Positions 51,315 through 64,000 of a DNA stretch of 64,000 nt are shown piece by piece. The notes below the pieces were generated by a model, which was not told the origin of the DNA, made no database searches, and worked only from the letters and a program-made list of their open reading frames with translations. The position numbers and the translations under genes are program-made. The first letter of the stretch is position 1; each line of letters begins with the position of its first letter. Origin of the DNA: Chlorokybus atmophyticus (lineage: Eukaryota; Plantae; Mesostigma and Chlorokybus algae); NCBI GenBank assembly GCA_009103225.1, contig RHPI01000585.1:285061-349060 (forward strand), written 5' to 3'.

Positions 51315-51920
51315 TGTCATGCCTATCGCCCAAGCATGCCAGTCGTCATCGGGCATGCCTACAGCGAGACCCTCGCCCGGCTTACCAGCATGGCGACCCG
51401 CGCGCGTCACTGACCAGTAGCTAGGTCATGTCTCTAGAGTAGCTCATGACCATAGCCTACACAGGCACCGCGCGTAGCTGTTCAGCTGTGAGTTCAATTA
51501 TAAGTTGGGTTCTATATCGAGTGGGGATTTCCTGTGGAAATAGCCTCGATATGACCGTTAGCTTATGTTCTGGACAGTCATGAGTTGACTTGTATAAGTA
51601 GGCACAGTGTTCACCGGATCAGCTGGTGACACTGTAAGTGAGAAAGCTAAGAGCTTGTGAAGCGACTTGAACTACGAAACACACTATCCCGGTTCCCAAG
51701 AATCCCCTCACCGTGTGAGAACCTGTGCATGTTCTTGTGCACTGTGCTTGTCTTTGCTGTGAGCTTTGTGTACTTGGTCGCGGTGTGCTTGTTGGCATCA
51801 GTCAGGGCATAGCATCCACGTGTTGCTTGCTCATTCACCTCACTTAACAGTGTAATTTCTCTTCCACTCATGCAAAGAACTGTGTAAACAGCACTACCTA
51901 TAGTAGTGGCTTGTTGACTT
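51315..51920 (+). repeat. LTR copy 1, near-identical to 52152-52757 but lacking the terminal ACA
   Basis: Direct repeat of ~605 bp starting TGTCATGCC. Confidence 0.9.
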
Positions 51921-52151: not shown

Positions 52152-52760
52152 TGTCATGCCTATCGCCCAAGCATGCCAGTCGTCATCGGGCATGCCTACA
52201 GCGAGACCCTCGCCCGGCTTACCAGCATGGCGACCCGCGCGCGTCTCTGACCAGTAGCTAGGTCATGTCTCTAGAGTAGCTCATGACCATAGCCTACATA
52301 GGCACCGCGCGTAGCTGTTCAGTTGTGAGTTCAGTTATAAGTTGGGTTCTATATCGAGTGGGGATTTCCTGTGGAAATAGCCTCGATATGACCGTTAGCT
52401 TATGTTCTGGACAGTCATGAGTTGACTTGTATAAGTAGGCACAGTGTTCACCAGATCAGCTGGTGACACTGTAAGTGAGAAAGCTAAGAGCTTGTGAAGC
52501 GACTTGAACTACGAAACACACTGTCCCGGTTCCCAAGAATTCCCTCACCGTGTGAGAACCTGTGCATGTTCTTGTGCACTGTGCTTGTCTTTGCTGTGAG
52601 CTTTGTGTACTTGGTCGCGGTGTGCTTGTTGGCATCAGTCAGGGCATAGCATCCACGTGTTGCTTGCTCATTCACCTCACTTAACAGTGTAATTTCTCTT
52701 CCACTCATGCAAAGAACTGTGTAAACAGCACTACCTATAGTAGTGGCTTGTTGACTTACA
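52152..52760 (+). repeat. 5' LTR of a truncated gypsy-like element
   Basis: TG..CA ends, TATAAG at 52430, followed by a leader and the gag ORF; no tRNA-type TGG PBS. Confidence 0.8.
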
Positions 52761-52967: not shown

Positions 52968-55360
52968 ATGAGCAGGCCCACCCCTTTCTCGCCAATAGAA
53001 GAAGGGGATCCCAACAGCTGGAGCCCAACCTCCAACCTTACCTACGAGCGCGCAAGTGAAGGGAGCGATTACCGTAGCAGCAGAGGCTCACGCCCCGTCT
53101 CCGGCTTCACCTCCTCTCACTCCACTCCTCGACAAGGAGCATCTCCACCACCGTCGGACAGTGACGACAAGGAGATGGAGCCTTCCAGCTCAACCAACTC
53201 CCTACGCTTCTCTGGACGCCTTGGCACCACCTCACTTGACAAGTTCATCATCAAGTTCCACTCCAAGATGCGGCAGCAAGCCCTAAAGAGCAAGGACTGG
53301 ACAGATGAGGTATCGTTTCATGTGTCCGCTCAATACCTTGATCACGAAGCACACGATGTGTGGAAGTCCGTCGCTGAGTTGCACAAGATTGATGGCTATG
53401 GCGAGTTGGCCAGCACAATAGCCNNNNNNNNNNNNNNNNNNNNNNNNNNNNNNNNNNNNNNNNNNNNNNNNNNNNNNNNNNNNNNNNNNNNNNNNNNNNN
53501 NNNNNNNNNNNNNNNNNNNNNNNNNNNNNNNNNNNNNNNNNNNNNNNNNNNNNNNNNNNNNNNNNNNNNNNNNNNNNNNNNNNNNNNNNNNNNNNNNNNN
53601 NNNNNNNNNNNNNNNNNNNNNNNNNNNNNNNNNNNNNNNNNNNNNNNNNNNNNNNCCCCTGCTACCAACACCGAACTCGCGTGCTCCAGCGGGAGGCAGT
53701 GTTTTCACCCTCGGCTCAGTGGCATTGCGTGCACCCGCGCTTACGGTGGGCGCGGCCATGTCGGACTCCCCGTTGAAGGACCTCTACGCCGCACTCCGGC
53801 GCACCTTCTCACCTCAAACCAACAGCAAGGTGGAGGAGTTGAGGCGTTTTCGACGCAAGCCCAACGAGGACCCTCTCCGACTGTATTCACGGTTGGAAGG
53901 GTTGCTTAAAGACACTGACTACAAGATCGTCAGTGAGGAGGCGGCAGCAGTGGTGTATGTGGCCGAGTTGGATCCCACCTCGAGCGAGTCCACGCGCCTG
54001 ACGCTGAACTACAGCAGGCCCCTCGGCTACACCCTCAAGGAAGCTTTCGAGACTGCACAAGCCATCCACAAGCGCGCAGTGTATGAGAAAGCGGTGCTGG
54101 ACACCAACCGCAGTGCCTCGCGGCCTATTGCAGGCACAAGTGCAGAGCCTCTTCGGCGGGACCGCAGCCGAGAGCCGCAAGGTATCCACAACAAGGATAA
54201 ACGGTCAGCTCATGCTGCCCTTGTGGCTCCAGTGCTGTGCCGCCGGTGTGGTCGACATGACCAATACAAAAAGGAGTGCACCGAAGATTACGGCAACCTT
54301 GTGTTCGACTACTGCCACAAGACGGGACTCTTGGAGACAGTATGCTGGCTCAAGTTCCCTGAGCTGCGGCCCTCTATTGGCTACAACAACGGCAACAACG
54401 CTGTTGGCTACCGCGGCAACAACAACAACAACAACAATAACGTGGGCTACAACAACAGCAACCACGCTGGCGGCTACAACAACAGCAACAACGCTGGTGG
54501 TCGCAACAATGGCAACAACGCTGGTGGCCACAACCCCAACCTCAACAACAACGCTGGGGCCCGCAAGGAAAAAGCTGGCTACAGAGGGAAAAACCTCCCT
54601 CCACAGCACAAAGGACCTGAGGGACGTCCTCGCGCTGGAGCTGCTGCTGTAAAGGCACCAACCAATCCACCAGCTATTGACCAAGTGGCAGCCCTGATGG
54701 CGCGCGTGGCACAGCTGGAGGAGAACAAGGAGCGGGACTATCAAGCCTGCTATGCTGCTAGGTGGGCACTGATGGCACCAAAACGGGATAGGGACACTCC
54801 CACGCCGTCACGCGTACAACCATCAAGACGTGCGCGCAGGGAAGCTGGCGCGTCGTCAACAGCGGCATCGTCGGACGCCACAAGTGGTGCTGCCTCGGCA
54901 GCCACAACCACTGCTAGGACGACGCCGTCGACGACGCCGTCGACGACTCCGTCGGCGTTCACACCGACCACGACAGCAGGTCAGCACTCTTGGCACCACG
55001 CTGTCCCCGGTGATGGAAAGCACCCACGCCGCAACAACCATGGTCGTTGGGTTCGAGGGTGGTGAATCCACCACTCCTGCCTCCATCGAAGCGACCACAT
55101 CGGCCGCAACTGCTGCCACCCTCACAGCCGCCACCTCAGTAACGACGGCTGCTGCCGGTGCCACCACCATCGCCTCCAGTAGTGCTGCCACACCCACTGC
55201 ACCACTTCTTGAGATTCGAACGGCACCGCCACCAGCACTTGACGTCACACAGCAAGTGCCACGCGGACCACATGCAGAACGCGCCTGGGCGTCGGTTCTA
55301 CGCAACGTGGAGCCCACCACCATTGCGTACGAACTAGGGGGGCAACGCACCACGCGCGTG
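52968..55360 (+). pseudogene. gag: Gag-like ORF (spans the assembly gap), cut off by the downstream DNA transposon
   Basis: LDKFIIKF..YLDHEAHDVW, LRRTF..VEELRRFRRKPNEDPLRLYSRLE, degenerate knuckles CRRCGRHDQYKKEC and YCHKTGLLETVC, Asn/Gly-rich and Thr/Ala-rich tails; no pol seen. Confidence 0.75.
53424..53655. other. Assembly gap (N run)
   Basis: 232 consecutive N. Confidence 1.
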
Positions 55361-55389
55361 GCACGCGATACCGGTAATTATGAGACCCC

Positions 55390-55960
55390 CGAATTTTTGA
55401 AAATTCATGGCAAACGCACTGAATCTTCGTTGTATTTACCGTTTCAGCTTTTTATCGCGTGAATATTCAAGTGTTTTCGTACATTCTGTGCAATCCCTGC
55501 CAAAACGAAATCGCGACATTCACCTATAAATCGCGTGAATATTCACACAATAAATCAATGCCACCTTTCAAAACCCATATACCTCGTATATTCAGTTGAA
55601 ATCAATTGAATGTTCAAGGGCATGCAATTGTGAATGGACACAGCATGTGCTCTGCTAAATATTCAGCTATACATTGCCTGAACATTCATGAAGGGGCATA
55701 AGCTTGTGGCTATAACAGACAGCTTAAACTCACCAAGTCCCAACTGCCCGTGAATAATCAATTGATCAGCTTGTCACACATGTATATTCATAACCTTCAT
55801 CAGTTTCATGCCACAGATGTGAGTGAACATTCAACACCAATCTGAAAATACGCAATACGATTCACACTAAGTCCTAGCTTTGAGTGAATTTTCAACACCA
55901 TTCCAAAACCAAGCAATACGTTTTGCACTAACTCCTAGCTGTGAGTGAATATTCAACCCC
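55390..55960. repeat. Subterminal array of TGAATATTCA-like palindromes, including three ~62-bp tandem units
   Basis: Variants near 55399, 55459, 55535, 55607, 55679, 55824, 55885 and 55946; tandem units at 55818-55960. Confidence 0.85.
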
Positions 55961-56165
55961 ACACGAATAAACATATACTCTCATTTTGGCCAAGTCCCGA
56001 AAGTGATTGAAACCAAGTAGATTGCACTGCTAATTCTAATATACAATCTAGTATATGTCAAAGCCAGAGTTGCTCAGCAATTCTACACAGCTGGTTTGAG
56101 TTGATGGTGGGGGACAGCTCTGATATGGACTACAGCATTGCTATGCTACACACCACCTGCTACTA

Positions 56166-59100
56166 CTAGCTCAACTCATGTCTTTGCTGTGCTAACATAC
56201 TGTCCATGAGTGTTCGCAATCGTCTTCTCAACCTGTCTGCCACTTGAGGATGAAACCAACTCCTTTGCATCTGCACACAACCACACAGCAATAACATGTG
56301 GTTACTAAGCACGTGTCGGCCTACACGACAGTGCCATTGAAGCACCTTCCACTTGTAAACATTGCAGTGCACATGCATGAACTGTACCTGTTGAAATATC
56401 CGTGCGTTTGGGTCAATTGGACCAGCTTGTACCCCATCTATAAACTTGTCAAGATACAGCATGACAAACAACCCGCACGCAACTCCATCCTTCTGCTGAG
56501 GGACCTGCACAAACATGTGTCAATGCTTGCAAACCAAATGCATGTGCATGCATCCAATCAGTGCTTGTGACAGAATGCATGCAAACTCATCACTAGTGCA
56601 ATGCAACGTGTGCTACCTGTGGTACAAGAAGCTGTACGTTTTCGGGAGAGAAGCGTCGTTGTGAGTCACTTCCATGCTTTCTGCCCCACATGTAGTCAAG
56701 GTAAGCGCGCATAGGTCCATCAACGTTGCGATGCAGGCCAAGGGAGTCGAGATGGACGAGTAAAGGCGGCGTGTCACTTCCAAGTTGGTTTCCAGGATTG
56801 CACACAAGCAGCAGACTCCAGTGAGTCCTGTGGACAATTAAAATAATTCCAGTTTGCAAATACAGCAGCAATTCAGCAAGATATTCTTGGCGCTTATTCT
56901 CACCGCGTGTCTGGGTTGACAATCACTCCCAGCAAGTCCTTGGCAAACGGATCACTCTCCCACCTGTCTATCCTGTGATTGCTCGTGTGCCAGTCATTTT
57001 GTCTATGGCAGCGCACGATCTTGGTGTAGAAATGCGGGTGGAACAGCTTCACCTGAATGCCATCTGCTCTGCCTAAGATTTCCTCTTCCTTGTATCTGCA
57101 TGTGCATCCCACGTACATATGAGATACACGAATAACACAGACGCAACAAATCACATACCTGCAAAAGAAGTGGAGGATGGTGTCATTGAGCTCTTGTCTG
57201 CCATCCAGCAACCTCCTGTCCGTTTCAAGCACTGGCACCGCATCACGTGCACTTGCACTAGGGTAAATGAACAGTGGCTGCGGTGTTGACGGCTGCGGGT
57301 TGCTGACTGGATCGTCCAGCACCATGATATCATCATCGCTGCCCACGAGGTCCACAACTGCCGCAGCCGTCGTGGGTTGCTGATTACAGCCCTCTTCGTC
57401 TTCATCGTCAACTTCCATCGTGACTGCCTCTGCAGCCATAAATGGTTCAATTGGGCAAGAACCACAACGCAAATCAACAAGCTCAAGCACACAGCAGCTT
57501 ACCATTGTTAGCCTCATCCCCACTCTCTTCAACGTGTTGAACCCCACTCTGCACAGGTTGTGAAACCCTACCGCAACTGCCCGGCAGAGAACGACGAGCA
57601 AGGCTCTCCCTTGGGAGCTGCGCTGGAGCACCACCTTCTTCGTACGCAGCGCATCGCGAGCACGTAACCTCAACCATGCTACCCACAGCGTGCCGTCGAC
57701 AGAGGCTGTTTGGACACGTCGCGCAGACTTGAAAAGCTGCTTCGTTGCAGTTCTTCACATGGCACCTGTTGAAGATATTCCTACATCCGGTCAGCCTGCC
57801 TTGCATACAAGAGAGAAGAGAAGGGACCTCGATGGGAGGACCTCGAAGACTCCGGACATAAAGGTCCTGGCGCGGACTGCAGAGAAGGGTCCTAGGAGAA
57901 TCGTCATATCTCCTAGAATACTCAGTCATTTGGGACGTGGCATAGCTTGTTGGAAAGCTTATCAAGTTAGCTACGTGGCACATCTTACAGCGTAGGATAT
58001 GGTTCAGTATATCGGACGCTGTTGCATGTAGACCAGCAATGTGTACAAACTGTGTACTGACTGGCGGGTATATAACCCCGTAGTCTGTTGGTAATAAATC
58101 GGGAAGTGTGTTGCCTTCTCCTGTGTGTCATTGCTTGCCCTCTTCACTTGCATGCTTGCTTCTCAACAGGTTATGGGCCCACACTACGCGTGAAAAGTGT
58201 GAGAAAGAGAAAGAAAGCGAAGTGAAGAAAAGTGACAAAGTGCATTGAAGTGAAGATCGAAGTCACTCAAGACTGAAGAGTGAAGAGAAGACCGAAGTCA
58301 CTCGAGACTGAAGGCGCTGAAGAGTGAAGTAAAGACCGAAGTCATTCAAGACCGAAGTCATTGAAGTCACTCAAAAGTGAAGTGTAAAAAAAAGTTACTG
58401 AAGTCAACAAAGTCACTCAAGTCACAACACGTGAAGATTATCAAAGCAAGTCTCAAGTGCTAACTGCAAGAAGAAAGCAGGCGCGGCAAAGATGGAGGCA
58501 AGCTACGATAAAGGGCTGATCACAAAGCTGGACACAAACAACTACAGCACTTGGTGCGTAGAGATGAAGGCACTACTTATCCACAAGAAGATGTGGAAGT
58601 ATGTTGACCCGAAGGCATCTGCACCAAGAGCAGGAGAAGAAAGCATCTGGCTTGAACACTCAGTTGAAGCACATTCATTGATGGTGCTTAACTGCAAGCC
58701 ACATCACTTTCCCATGCTCACAGCATGTGAAGATGGCAGACAAGCTTGGGAGAAGCTTGCAGCCGTATTTCAAGCCAAGAACAACGCCAGAAAGATACAA
58801 TTACGCAAGCAGCTAAGCGCGCTTCATAAAGAGACGGCCGAGCCGGTCACAAAGTATGTTGAACGTGCGAGAGAGCTGTGGGCGGACCTCATCAACGTCG
58901 GCCACAACATGGAAGAGACAGAGGTCGTATTGGCGATTGTTGCAGGACTGCCATTAGAGTACGAAGTTGTCGCTACTCTGCTCGAGACATCGTCATCGGA
59001 GCTAACCCTAGACGATGTGCTACCCAAGTTGCTCACTGTGGAGCAACGCGTCTTAAAGAAGGAAGAGCAAGCGGACTCTGTGGCCTTCTACACACGAGAC

Positions 59101-62100
59101 AAATACAAGAAATTAAGCAACTATGAAGACAAGAACAAGGCGAAAGGCAGCAACTCAAAGTTCAAGAATCTCACATGCCACTATTGTGGTATTAAAGGAC
59201 ATATCTCAAAGGATTGTCGTAAGCGCCAACGAGAGCAATCTGAAGCAGGCACCAGTAGCAACGCTCAACGCAAAGAAAAGGGTGTTGCATTTACTGCCTC
59301 AAGGAAGTTTGATACAACTTCATGGGCAATTGACTCAGGCTGTGACCAGCATCTCACACCGCACAAGGAGGTGATGGAGAACTACAGGAAGATGTCAACC
59401 ACAAGGAAGGTGGAAGGCTTTAGTGGTCACGAGTTGGAAGCAATAGGAGTTGGTGAAGTGAGGCTTCAATGCAAGATTGGTGATGGTGAGAGAGAGGTGG
59501 TACTGCGTGAAGTATTGCACGTACCTGGAGCTGCTGCAAGCTTGTTTTCTGTGAGAGTTGCTGAGCGCGTGGGAGCTGAGATAGTGATCCGGGAGGGACG
59601 CTGCTCCGTACGCATGGATGGGGTCGAGTACATGGTCGGCACCCAACGAGGAGGGCTCTACATTGTGGAGCAGACTCATGGCAGCAAGGCCATGATTGTG
59701 AAGGAGAAGGAGACGGCTGAGCTTTGGCATCGAAGGTTCGGGCATTTGGGCTACAGCAACCTCACACGCCTGGTCGCTGAAGACATGGTGAAGGGCATTA
59801 CTGGGAGCAAGGAAGATTTTCAAGCGTCTTCAACTACGCTCTGTGAACCCTGTGTGTTGGCCAAGCAGCATCGCATGCCGTTCTCATCATCTTCTTCAAG
59901 TAGCAAACATCCCTGCGAGCTTGTGCACATGGACGTTTGCGGGCCTATGCGCATTGTGGCGAAAGGAGGGGTAAGGTACTTTGCAACATTCCTCGACGAC
60001 TACAGCAAGCTTTCCATCGTCTTCCCTTTGATTCAAAAGTCAGAAGTCGCTGGAGCTGTGCGTACAGTCATTGCATTGCTTGAGATTCAATCGGGCAAGA
60101 AGATGAAAGCAATGAGAAGTGATCGAGGAGGGGAGTACATCAACGCCCAGCTCAAAGAGTTCTTCGCCAGCAAAGGCATACGGCATGAGACAACAGCACC
60201 ATACACTCCGCAGCAGAATGGAGCAGCTGAACGTCTCAACCGAACGTTGTTGGAGCGTGTTCGAGCCATGCTCAATGACACCAAGTTGGAGGACAGTCTG
60301 TGGAAAGAGGCCGTTCTCACTGCCAACTACATCCGCAACCGTTCACCGATAAGCTCTGAGCAAAAGACTCCGTGGGAGCTCTTTTACGGTGAAGCGCCAG
60401 ATGTGAGTGGCATGCGTGTGTTCGGATGTGTGGCATATGCACTTGTGCCAAGTCAATTGCGACACAAGTTGGAGCCGGTCAGCAAGAAGGGCATCTTCGT
60501 TGGCTACGAACCAGGCTCAAAGGCGTACAAGGTCCTACTGGAGGACACGCGCAAGATTGTGGTGAGCAGAGAAGTCGTGTTCCACGAAGGCTCATCACAA
60601 GTTGAAGCTGAAGAAGGTTTCTACCCTCAAGATGAAGATGACAAAGCACAACCTGAAGAGCTTTCAAGCAGAGAAGAGGTTGAAGGCGAGGCATCAGTCA
60701 TCAATAAAGAGCAGGGCTCATCTGTAGCAGGCGAGAAGCAGAAGCAGCAGGAGCAAGCTCGACGCTACCCAGTGAGGGAAAGACAAGCACCTGACTTCTA
60801 CAAGGCACACATCGCTAGTGTGCACAATGACGAGAGTGAAGAACCAAGCACCTACGAGGAGGCATTGCGAGCACCAGATGCAGAACAATGGCAGCGAGCT
60901 ATGGATGATGAGATTGCATCACTCCATGCCAACAACACATGGGTGTTGGAGAAGCCCCCGCAAGGTGTGAAGCCCATTCCGGTCAAGTGGGTGTTCAAGG
61001 TGAAGCGTGATGGTCAAGGCAACATCGAGCGCTACAAGGCAAGGTTGGTGGCAAAGGGATTTTTGCAACAAGAAGGTGTGGATTTCAATGAAGTGTTTGC
61101 ACCTGCAAGTAAGCATGCAACCTTCCGCACATTGATCGCCATGGTTGCTGCTGAAGACCTCGAGTGTCACCACCTTGATGTGAAGACTGCTTTCCTTTAC
61201 GGAGAGCTGGAGGAAGAGATCTACACCAAGCAACCACCAGGCTACGCAGAAGGGGAGCCAGGCATGGCTTGCAAGTTGATCAAGGCTTTGTATGGGCTGC
61301 GACAAGCACCACGTGTGTGGCACATTCGCCTCACGAAAGAGTTGGAGAAACTCGGCTACAAAGCATCCTCAGCGGATCCGGGGCTCTTCATCCATGAAGA
61401 GAAGAAGGTTTACTTGCTCGTGTATGTGGACGACATCATCGTCACGGCCAAGCAAGTTGAAGACCTGAAGCAAACGAAGCACGGATTGCAGCAAGCATTC
61501 GCAGTACGCGACCTTGGAGAGGTCAAGTTATTTCTTGGCATGGTGATAGAGCGTGACAGAGCAGCACGCACAATCAAGATCAGCCAAGAGCAGATGGTGA
61601 AGCAACTTGTCACCAAGTTCGGACTCAACGAAGCAAAGACCAAGTCTACTCCATTGGCACTCGGCACCAACCTCGTCAAAGCGAAAGATGAGGAAGTACT
61701 CGACAAGGCTCAGTATCCCTATGGTGAGCTTGTTGGGAGTATGCTCTACCTAGCAGTGTGCACAAGACCCGACATCGCACATGCAGTTGGAGTGCTTGCG
61801 CGCTACATGTCTGCACCAAGCATGGAGCACTGGCGTGCAGCGAAGGGAGTATTGCGCTACGTGGCTGGAAGCGCAAGTGTTGGCATCAAGTTTGGTTGCG
61901 GAAGCACAGAGATGGAGGGCTATTGCGACGCAGACTTTGCAGGTGACCTCGATAGCAGGAGGTCCACCACGGCGTACGTCTTCAAGTTGAATGGAGGCGT
62001 GGTGAGCTGGAACAGTAGGCTGCAACCTACAACAGCAGCATCTACTTCGGAAGCGGAGTACATGGCAGCATCGGCTGCAGTGAAGGAGGCGTTATGGCTT

Positions 62101-64000
62101 CGCAAGCTGATGGCAGATCTGGAGCACCCGATGGCGTGTATCACGATCAACTGCGACAACCAAGGCGCCATCAAGTTGCTGAAGCACCCCATTGCCTCGA
62201 CAAGGACAAAGCACATTGATGTCATGCATCACTTTGTGCGAGACAGAGTCACACGCAAGGAGGTTGAGTTCCAATATTGCAATACGGAAGACATGCTCGC
62301 GGACTTCATGACGAAGCCACTGTCACCGCTGAAGTTCAAGGCATGTTGCAAGGGACTCGGCATATGTGCTTAGGTGAAAGAAGACCAAGCGTTGGAGGCC
62401 AAGCTGCCCGCGTGGGAGTGTTGAAGATATTCCTACATCCGGTCAGCCTGCCTTGCATACAAGAGAGAAGAGAAGGGACCTCGATGGGAGGACCTCGAAG
62501 ACTCCGGACATAAAGGTCCTGGCGCGGACTGCAGAGAAGGGTCCTAGGAGAATCGTCATATCTCCTAGAATACTCAGTCATTTGGGACGTGGCATAGCTT
62601 GTTGGAAAGCTTATCAAGTTAGCTACGTGGCACATCTTACAGCGTAGGATATGGTTCAGTATATCGGACGCTGTTGCATGTAGACCAGCAGTGTGTACAA
62701 ACTGTGTACTGACTGGCGGGTATAACCCCGTAGTCTGTCGGTAATAAATCGGGAAGTGTGTTGCCTTCTCCTGTGTGTCATTGCTTGCCCTCTTCACTTG
62801 CATGCTTGCTTCTCAACAGCACCTGTGTTTTGGTTCAGTACAAGTGATGATGGTTCTAGGAGTGAAGTTCCTCACAACAAGATGCCAAGCATTTGCTGCA
62901 ATGAAGTCCACTTACTCATGCCTTGGGCACTCCCAATATTCATCCTCCACAGGTGGCATAGAGACACAGTGCGCGTGGTAGCTTTTCCAGCAACCTTCCA
63001 CATCGCAGCCAGATATGGTGCCCCCATCCTTGCAGACAAAGCAGTAGTCTTCATGTTCCCGATGTTCCAACGCATCCAGCTCCAGTCTCGGTCTCATCCT
63101 GTGAACAAAGGTTCGGTGGCCAGGTCTACAGTCTCACAGTAGGGATAGGAGGCATCACAATCGCAAACAGTACCTCTTGTACTCAAAATGCCAGTCACGG
63201 CGTGTGGTCCATGACACCTCGCTCGAGGCGCTATTGGTTTCGCTTTGGGCACCCTGCACCAAGTACACAAGATGGTTGTATGTGATGCCAAAACCCAGGA
63301 TATATGAGGACATCCAGATTCTAATGGACAACGTTGTTAACTCTCCTCTTACCGGAGTGTCCCGGTGCATGCCTCGACGCATGAGACTGCGCCTGTCTTT
63401 AACAAGCGCTACAATTACTTTGTTGTCATGGGGATCAATTCCCTCAAACCACTGGCCCTTGACCTGCCAGCAAGAAGGGATATTCATCAGCCATTTTCAT
63501 ACTACTATTTCAATTTACTATCATCACACCAAGCACACGCCAAAACGATTGCAACACAGCCACTTACCAGGTTGCAATCAAGGTAGGTTTGTTCTGCAAA
63601 GCGGGGCTTGTCTTTTCTTAGGATTGCAAATCCTCCACTGTGCTGGACTTGGTTGCTCATGTACCACCTAGCTCTGAGCAGCTGGTGCTCCCGACCAGCT
63701 ATCACCACAACATCAAAAGATTGCACCCTGCCATACCAATGGATCTTCTTGGTTGGGTCATCTGAGTCACGCCCAACGGTAAACACGCCACAGTCCATGG
63801 TGCGGAGTTTCTTCTCCATTTCCTCTGCTCTGAACTGACCGATGTCCTTGTAGCGTGCTCTGAAGTATCGCTTGATGTACTTTGGAAAGATTGGACCGCT
63901 TAATAGCTCCATCTCGTGCTTTGTAAGCTCCCTAGCAGGTCCACGCCAGTGATGCAGCTCAGTCATATGCTCCATGTCCTTTGCCACGACATGTCCACGA
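56166..64000 (-). CDS. Spliced fusion ORF: CACTA transposase C-terminus + PHD-C5HCH + SIMs + Ulp1/C48 SUMO protease (5'-incomplete)
   Basis: Exons 64000-63568, 63463-63353, 63253-63174, 63098-62916, 57765-57503, 57429-57159, 57095-56904, 56827-56617, 56504-56388 and 56270-56166; all nine introns are GT-AG with compatible phases and there is no in-frame stop (~650 aa visible). Motifs: WYGRVQSF..LLRARWY..TYLDCNLVKGQWFEGIDP; EDYCFVCKDGG..YHAHC..WECPRHECHVKNC..CATCPNSLCRRH; HWSL..HLDSL..PQQKDGVACG. Confidence 0.82.
58169..58182 (+). promoter_or_regulatory. Primer-binding site complementary to the anticodon stem-loop of initiator tRNA-Met
   Basis: GGTTATGGGCCCAC is the reverse complement of GUGGGCCCAUAACC of tRNAiMet, the half-tRNA priming type known from Drosophila copia, yeast Ty5 and Volvox Osser. 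Confidence 0.85.
58492..62373 (+). CDS. gag-pol: Gag-Pol polyprotein, 1293 aa (gag, CCHC, PR, GAG-pre-integrase, IN, RT, RNase H)
   Basis: CHYCGIKGHISKDC, WAIDSGC, LWHRRFGH..CEPC, VHMDVCGP..QQNGAAER, RYKARLVAKG, YVDD, YCDADFAGD..TKHIDV; uninterrupted. Confidence 0.98.
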   Translation: MEASYDKGLITKLDTNNYSTWCVEMKALLIHKKMWKYVDPKASAPRAGEESIWLEHSVEAHSLMVLNCKPHHFPMLTACEDGRQAWEKLAAVFQAKNNARKIQLRKQLSALHKETAEPVTKYVERARELWADLINVGHNMEETEVVLAIVAGLPLEYEVVATLLETSSSELTLDDVLPKLLTVEQRVLKKEEQADSVAFYTRDKYKKLSNYEDKNKAKGSNSKFKNLTCHYCGIKGHISKDCRKRQREQSEAGTSSNAQRKEKGVAFTASRKFDTTSWAIDSGCDQHLTPHKEVMENYRKMSTTRKVEGFSGHELEAIGVGEVRLQCKIGDGEREVVLREVLHVPGAAASLFSVRVAERVGAEIVIREGRCSVRMDGVEYMVGTQRGGLYIVEQTHGSKAMIVKEKETAELWHRRFGHLGYSNLTRLVAEDMVKGITGSKEDFQASSTTLCEPCVLAKQHRMPFSSSSSSSKHPCELVHMDVCGPMRIVAKGGVRYFATFLDDYSKLSIVFPLIQKSEVAGAVRTVIALLEIQSGKKMKAMRSDRGGEYINAQLKEFFASKGIRHETTAPYTPQQNGAAERLNRTLLERVRAMLNDTKLEDSLWKEAVLTANYIRNRSPISSEQKTPWELFYGEAPDVSGMRVFGCVAYALVPSQLRHKLEPVSKKGIFVGYEPGSKAYKVLLEDTRKIVVSREVVFHEGSSQVEAEEGFYPQDEDDKAQPEELSSREEVEGEASVINKEQGSSVAGEKQKQQEQARRYPVRERQAPDFYKAHIASVHNDESEEPSTYEEALRAPDAEQWQRAMDDEIASLHANNTWVLEKPPQGVKPIPVKWVFKVKRDGQGNIERYKARLVAKGFLQQEGVDFNEVFAPASKHATFRTLIAMVAAEDLECHHLDVKTAFLYGELEEEIYTKQPPGYAEGEPGMACKLIKALYGLRQAPRVWHIRLTKELEKLGYKASSADPGLFIHEEKKVYLLVYVDDIIVTAKQVEDLKQTKHGLQQAFAVRDLGEVKLFLGMVIERDRAARTIKISQEQMVKQLVTKFGLNEAKTKSTPLALGTNLVKAKDEEVLDKAQYPYGELVGSMLYLAVCTRPDIAHAVGVLARYMSAPSMEHWRAAKGVLRYVAGSASVGIKFGCGSTEMEGYCDADFAGDLDSRRSTTAYVFKLNGGVVSWNSRLQPTTAASTSEAEYMAASAAVKEALWLRKLMADLEHPMACITINCDNQGAIKLLKHPIASTRTKHIDVMHHFVRDRVTRKEVEFQYCNTEDMLADFMTKPLSPLKFKACCKGLGICA

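Follow-up and report, generated by a model that had tools for sequence, protein, structure and literature searches.

A copia retrotransposon at a splice acceptor in Chlorokybus atmophyticus, its rebuilt acceptor and the likely fate of the interrupted gene

In a 64,000-nucleotide stretch of the genome of Chlorokybus atmophyticus (hereafter the window, 64 kb), a copia element has inserted recently, and in antisense orientation, exactly where a 93-nt intron meets the C5HCH exon in a putative PHD-C5HCH-Ulp1 gene, such that the splice acceptor of this intron is now present twice, once on either side of the element. LTR elements end in ..CA on either strand; because the LTR ends in CA and the target-site duplication begins with the G of the acceptor, the acceptor was rebuilt in register. 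This rebuilding is an automatic by-product of integration and calls for no special adaptation. The fullest explanation of the locus, which is held here with moderate confidence, is that of a by-product copia insertion in a disabled gene copy, nested in what would be a CACTA transposase gene.

The copia element and the duplicated acceptor

The coordinates of the element, of the duplication and of the interrupted gene are compiled in Table 1. The two LTRs differ at 58039 (A/G), at 58069-70 (a TA indel) and at 58089 (T/C), that is, by two substitutions and one 2-bp indel, which corresponds to a divergence of ≈ 0.5% of sites (≈ 99% identity). The order of domains in the open reading frame, as assigned by Pfam, is gag, zinc knuckle, Pol beta-barrel (Pol_BBD), pre-integrase, integrase core, SH3-like and RVT_2, with the integrase preceding the reverse transcriptase (rve 473-573, RVT_2 814-1055). 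The element is young and intact, and it is probably still autonomous. At the position of the polypurine tract, only the short GTGGGAG precedes the 3' LTR at 62419.

Table 1. Features of the copia insertion and of the interrupted gene, in positions of the window (a slash in a motif marks a splice or insertion junction throughout)
Feature	Position	Strand	Description
Intact Ty1/copia LTR retrotransposon	57767-62818	+	5052 nt, antisense to the minus-strand host gene
5' LTR	57767-58168	+	402 nt, TG...CA; begins TGTTG, ends CAACA; direct-repeat search
3' LTR	62419-62818	+	400 nt, TG...CA; begins TGTTG, ends CAACA; direct-repeat search
Primer-binding site	58169-58181	+	GGTTATGGGCCCA; directly adjoins the 5' LTR
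gag-pol open reading frame	58492-62373	+	1293 aa, uninterrupted
Target-site duplication, distal copy	57762-57766		plus strand GCACC, gene strand GGTGC; the new AG ends on its first G (57766)
Target-site duplication, proximal copy	62819-62823		G of the old AG at 62823; formal donor GT at 62822-62821
Upstream host exon	63568-64000	-	144 aa, runs off the end of the window
PHD exon	62916-63098	-	NSD-type PHD finger, ends ..WECPRH + GA
Original intron	62823-62915	-	93 nt, GTAAGT...CACAG, fully intact
C5HCH exon	57503-57765	-	starts G TGC CAT GTG
Downstream protease exons	57429-57159, 57095-56904, 56827-56617, 56504-about 56169	-	Ulp1/C48-like; frames open, introns GT-AG

The primer-binding site GGTTATGGGCCCA is a 13-mer that recurs identically in the antisense oligonucleotide against human tRNA-Met(i) given in PMC1797187. 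It complements the region of the anticodon stem-loop in initiator tRNA-Met, the reference tRNA being the human one; no tRNA gene was found within the 64-kb window. The site is of the internal half-tRNA type, as in Drosophila copia and in Ty5 of yeast (PMC5371799), a type of priming that is seen here in an element of the green lineage. The nearest public relative of the polyprotein is 54% identical, and the exact polyprotein is absent from the protein collection searched, as is a 30-mer of the LTR from the metagenome contigs searched. Likewise, a second copy of the same family was not found in the window, and blastn searches with the LTR and the internal region returned old relatives only, at 66-76% identity. 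Between the primer-binding site and the start of gag, the leader contains three GAAG-rich tandem units of ≈ 44 nt each (58238-58360).

At the proximal junction the minus strand reads CACAG/GTGC, followed by LTR sequence, with the old AG at 62824-62823. At the distal junction it reads CAACAG/GTGCCATG, with a new AG at 57767-57766, the A of which is the terminal base of the LTR (57767) and the G the first base of the duplication, such that a second CAG/GTGC is obtained at 57768-57766. At its inner end, the other LTR has CAACA/C and no AG. Within the antisense LTR end, the motif CTGAC at 57794-57790 offers a candidate branch A at 57791, 25 nt before the new junction, together with a weak pyrimidine run. 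In terms of mechanism, a staggered integrase cut of 5 bp would have begun, on the gene strand, with the G of the acceptor AG; the distal junction would then necessarily consist of CA plus G, and the acceptor CAG/GTGC would thereby be duplicated. A CAG at the distal edge is to be expected of any insertion with a duplication that opens on G.

Much of this anatomy had been proposed in the first-pass annotation, according to which the duplication GGTGC includes the G of the original AG, the LTR end and the duplicated G form a new CAG at 57766-57768, a branch-like CTGAC lies inside the LTR, and the other LTR lacks the AG. All of its coordinates hold: the duplication agrees base for base in both copies, and the new CAG, the CTGAC and the lack of AG at the other LTR were found as described. 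A feature that had not been part of this first observation is the GT supplied by the duplication at 62822-62821, which makes the old acceptor, to judge by its letters, a recursive-type site.

The interrupted gene and its predicted splicing

Taken alone, the PHD exon scores 29.5 bits against PF22908 (PHD_NSD, cut-off 23.9) and can be aligned with PHD finger 5 of NSD3 as far as ..WECPWH (4gnd residues 12-59, E 3e-10). The C5HCH exon alone passes the cut-off of PF17982 narrowly, with 26.5 versus 26.3 bits, and aligns to residues 63-92 of NSD3 in 4gnd, its first loop being two residues longer. By homology, the exon-wise alignments to NSD3 support the PHD-C5HCH exon junction: NSD3 has H-Q-C at the join of the two fingers and the present gene H-E-C, the E codon being split as GA/G, and the motif CP-x-H-x-C spans the join. 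For the protease part, PF02902 (Peptidase_C48) gave 17.3 and 17.7 bits on two single exons, both below the cut-off of 20.7; the motifs THWSLL, HLDSLG and DGVACG, with the His, Asp and Cys residues, are visible by eye. The other introns of the gene model (n = 8) are all 63-112 nt long and canonical GT-AG; a literature search on intron lengths in Chlorokybus yielded nothing usable. One of them, the 63-nt intron at 57096-57158 on the minus strand, which separates the two exons ahead of the protease core, is in frame and free of stop codons, and its retention would add 21 residues and no truncation. The 144-aa upstream exon has no Pfam match and gave 0 hits among 1.84 billion representative proteins. 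A link of this exon to fungal hypothetical clusters, one of them with DUF6830, was set aside, since the Atlas matches were low-recognition ones only.

The donor of the original intron reads CATGA/GTAAGT, and the intron starts at base 62915. Translated on short junction strings of 12 to 18 codons, with the host exons analysed one by one and not joined, the splice to the old acceptor reads HECC-stop in silico, and the splice to the new acceptor, across an intron of 5150 nt, reads HECHVKNCNEAAF (..WECPRH-E-CHVKNC..). Furthermore, the element and one copy of the duplication together constitute a formal GT-AG intron of 5057 nt (GT 62822-62821, AG 57767-57766), the removal of which leaves exactly one copy of the duplication and an open frame, with the product HECHVKNC. 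In silico, two earlier claims are borne out by these strings, namely that joining the donor at 62915 to the rebuilt acceptor, in the frame CAT GA/G TGC CAT, restores the pre-insertion product, and that use of the old acceptor truncates the protein after the first PHD.

Two routes could lead to an intact product. In the first, the donor at 62915 would be joined directly to the AG at 57767-57766; in the second, the 93-nt intron would be removed in the normal manner, and the element would then be taken out from the regenerated GA/GTGCTGTT. Because the old acceptor, the branch region and the 93-nt spacing are all unchanged, use of the distant acceptor is the less likely choice; the proximal acceptor is 55 times closer, and the distal route calls for an intron ≈ 50 times the length of the others in the gene model. 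If the untouched proximal acceptor is used, the frame would stop after four codons (HECC-stop), and four or more exon junctions would follow. As alternatives to truncation, the transcript might not extend across the 5-kb antisense copia, or the locus might be silenced, an outcome that a convergent, intact copia presumably invites. Precise removal of the element would be at most a minor product. As far as can be read from the locus, the balance tips in favour of a disabled gene copy, in which the precise product would be absent or minor.

The insertion might instead be tolerated, if a sizeable share of the transcripts were to lose the element, directly or recursively, and the full PHD-C5HCH-Ulp1 protein were made, perhaps only with the copia silent. 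For such a course the GT...AG geometry and the reading frame are perfect, but introns of 5057-5150 nt would be needed where local introns measure 63-112 nt, and the intact proximal acceptor lies at a small fraction of that distance. The CTGAC motif is placed suitably, 25 nt before the new AG, yet a competing TAG at 57782-57781 lies 10 nt past the candidate branch A and would, if used as acceptor, add 15 nt in frame (HENIFNRCHV). With regard to the donor, the regenerated GTGCTGTT resembles the donor of the gene's own intron 3, AG/GTACTGTT, from which it is one purine apart, and the antisense element holds neither a GTRAGT, that is, a strong consensus donor, nor an AATAAA, its nine GT[AG]AG sites being about the chance number. 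It is because of this resemblance, and because GTRAGT and AATAAA are missing from the antisense element, that the two-step route is not absurd. The convergent orientation of the intact copia speaks against tolerance. There is experimental precedent in Evelknievel, inserted in CMT1, but the full-length mRNA was recovered there only in very low amount (PMC6238269). The open frames of the downstream exons were considered as a sign of tolerance and rejected: with LTRs ≈ 99% identical, too little time has passed for decay, and open exons are uninformative on selection since the insertion. On balance, tolerance of the insertion is regarded as doubtful, and disablement of the gene copy is preferred.

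A narrower form of precise removal would be that the copia and one copy of the duplication leave as the 5057-nt GT-AG intron at an accidental recursive site of zero length, and only while the copia is silenced. This is judged decidedly improbable. If it were true, the copia would gate the full-length transposase-reader-protease of a CACTA transposon, in an alga whose neighbouring introns are 63-112 nt long. The first-pass annotation had gone further and regarded the 5-kb insertion as potentially harmless; of this claim, the geometry, the product and the precedent stand, whereas the intact proximal acceptor, 93 nt from the donor, and the probable nature of the host as a transposon gene tell against it. 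The possible on/off switch that it proposed, and the idea that the family is enriched at host 3' splice sites, are speculative.

The nature of the host gene and the part played by chance

Some 200-700 nt past the stop codon of the host gene, the palindromic motif GTGAATATTCA has nine matches within 55459-55956 and none elsewhere in the 64-kb window, a count that was reached by 0 of 100 shuffles. The motif occurs in both orientations, as is the case in the subterminal arrays of CACTA/EnSpm elements, and three 61-nt tandem units lie in the same region at 55815-55997. The array probably represents subterminal repeats of the carrier transposon in which the host gene resides. No CACTA-type terminal end could be fixed near the array, and the window's other CACTA element has ends that show no similarity to the region below the host gene. 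The window is dense with other transposons besides. The host exons seen here probably make up the 3' tail of a multi-copy CACTA transposase gene, with the putative transposase located beyond position 64000, and we hold with good confidence that the copia insertion is a case of nested transposons. Since the host is probably a transposon gene, the notions of an insertion 'made harmless' and of a 'switch' hold little selective meaning.

A host that is a cellular chromatin gene present in a single copy, in which case the insertion would be a true mutant allele with phenotypic consequences, is unlikely. The domains PHD_NSD, C5HCH and C48 do occur in cellular proteins as well, and tblastn searches with every host exon detected neither a paralogue nor an uninterrupted copy within the window; however, an array of the transposon-subterminal type lies just downstream of the gene, in surroundings full of other transposons. 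Nesting within a CACTA transposon is therefore the reading that is retained.

Two further repeats were observed on this side of the gene. An imperfect, CAACAAC-rich repeat at 54384-54552 lies within plus-strand open reading frames (53719-55462) and adjoins the presumed end of the host transposon, and a pair of 300-nt direct repeats (51315-51614 and 52152-52451), 99% identical, is spaced by 837 nt.

As to the position of the copia, there are four patterns of duplication, GGTNN, AGGTN, NAGGT and NNAGG, which turn an element and one copy of its duplication into a formal, precise GT...AG intron; GGTGC is of the GGTNN type. Within the host gene, 4.8% of the 5-mers fit one of the precise patterns, and by this measure copia insertions would in ≈ 4-5% of all cases be 'spliceable', formally, by this geometry. 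An existing acceptor would be rebuilt in register at 8 of the 2772 host-gene positions (≈ 0.29%), and a few such cases are expected in a copia-rich genome. That the position is not due to chance, be it that the copia integrase prefers acceptor-like or protosplice (AG/GT) targets or that only such insertions survive, as in an intron-mimicking family, is scarcely credible: the one case at hand, with its duplication GGTGC starting on the AG, stands against a single copy of the family in the window, public relatives that are at most 54% identical, and the ≈ 0.3% of genic insertions that chance alone would place in register.

Comparison with known systems

For CMT1::Evelknievel, the source is reportedly Henikoff and Comai (1998). 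The copia-like Evelknievel resides in exon 13 of CMT1 in Arabidopsis Ler, flanked by the duplication GGCTG (PMC6238269, Yadav et al. 2018). One of the splice variants, SV2, accounts for 25% of the splices that remove the element; it makes use of a GC donor in the upstream duplication, its AG consists of the LTR's last A together with the G that opens the downstream copy, and it restores the reading frame (PMC6238269). The full-length mRNA was recovered in very low amount only, and none was recovered when the element was de-silenced (PMC6238269). The likeness to the present locus is close: in both, a whole LTR element and one copy of its 5-bp duplication are removable, the AG is built identically, and the frame remains intact, here in silico. 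The differences lie in the donor, which is a non-canonical GC inside an exon in CMT1 and a canonical GT from GGTGC in Chlorokybus, and in the position, in that the insertion occurred here on an existing acceptor and the native donor, 93 nt upstream, can also pair with the new AG. In addition, RNA evidence is at hand for Evelknievel, whereas the present case is known from sequence alone.

That splice sites are borrowed from target-site duplications is the accepted model for introner-derived introns (PMC11282704). Introners and other transposon-derived introns (PMC11282704, PMC9860276) share with the Chlorokybus copia that the duplication completes one splice dinucleotide and that exact removal is possible. 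They are, however, short, non-autonomous and mostly DNA transposons, with many spliced copies, in contrast to a single autonomous retrotransposon of 5 kb, the splicing of which is in silico.

Recursive splice sites, or ratchet points, are known from long Drosophila introns and have the consensus AG/GTAAGT. The old acceptor resembles them in that a GT follows at once (CACAG/GTGCTG, 62827-62817), such that a first splice would regenerate a 5' splice site with an exon of zero length. It differs in its donor half, GTGCTG, which is weak, off the consensus, and arose by accident from the duplication. Judged on these motifs, a ratchet-point-like function of the old acceptor is possible.

Retrotransposon alleles of maize waxy provide a further parallel, with intragenic elements located in introns. 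Along these lines, COPIA-R7 occupies intron 1 of RPP7 in Arabidopsis (PMC7529245). In these cases, as would be required here, an intragenic element has to be transcribed through and spliced out, and how much full-length mRNA is obtained depends on the element's chromatin state. Unlike the present copia, the elements in question are located within introns, in organisms whose introns are long, and no splice site was duplicated.

As it stands, the anatomy of the Chlorokybus locus is correct and tidy, and its explanation is ordinary. Were the element spliced out, it would be a second and cleaner (canonical GT-AG) case of a whole LTR retrotransposon that serves as an intron by way of its own duplication, and one found in a green lineage that diverged early and whose introns are very short. 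Such a case would bear on the birth of introns from transposons and on the maximum intron size that a spliceosome of this kind can handle. The mechanism is already known in kind; what this locus adds to the known systems is the canonical dinucleotides and the position on an existing acceptor.
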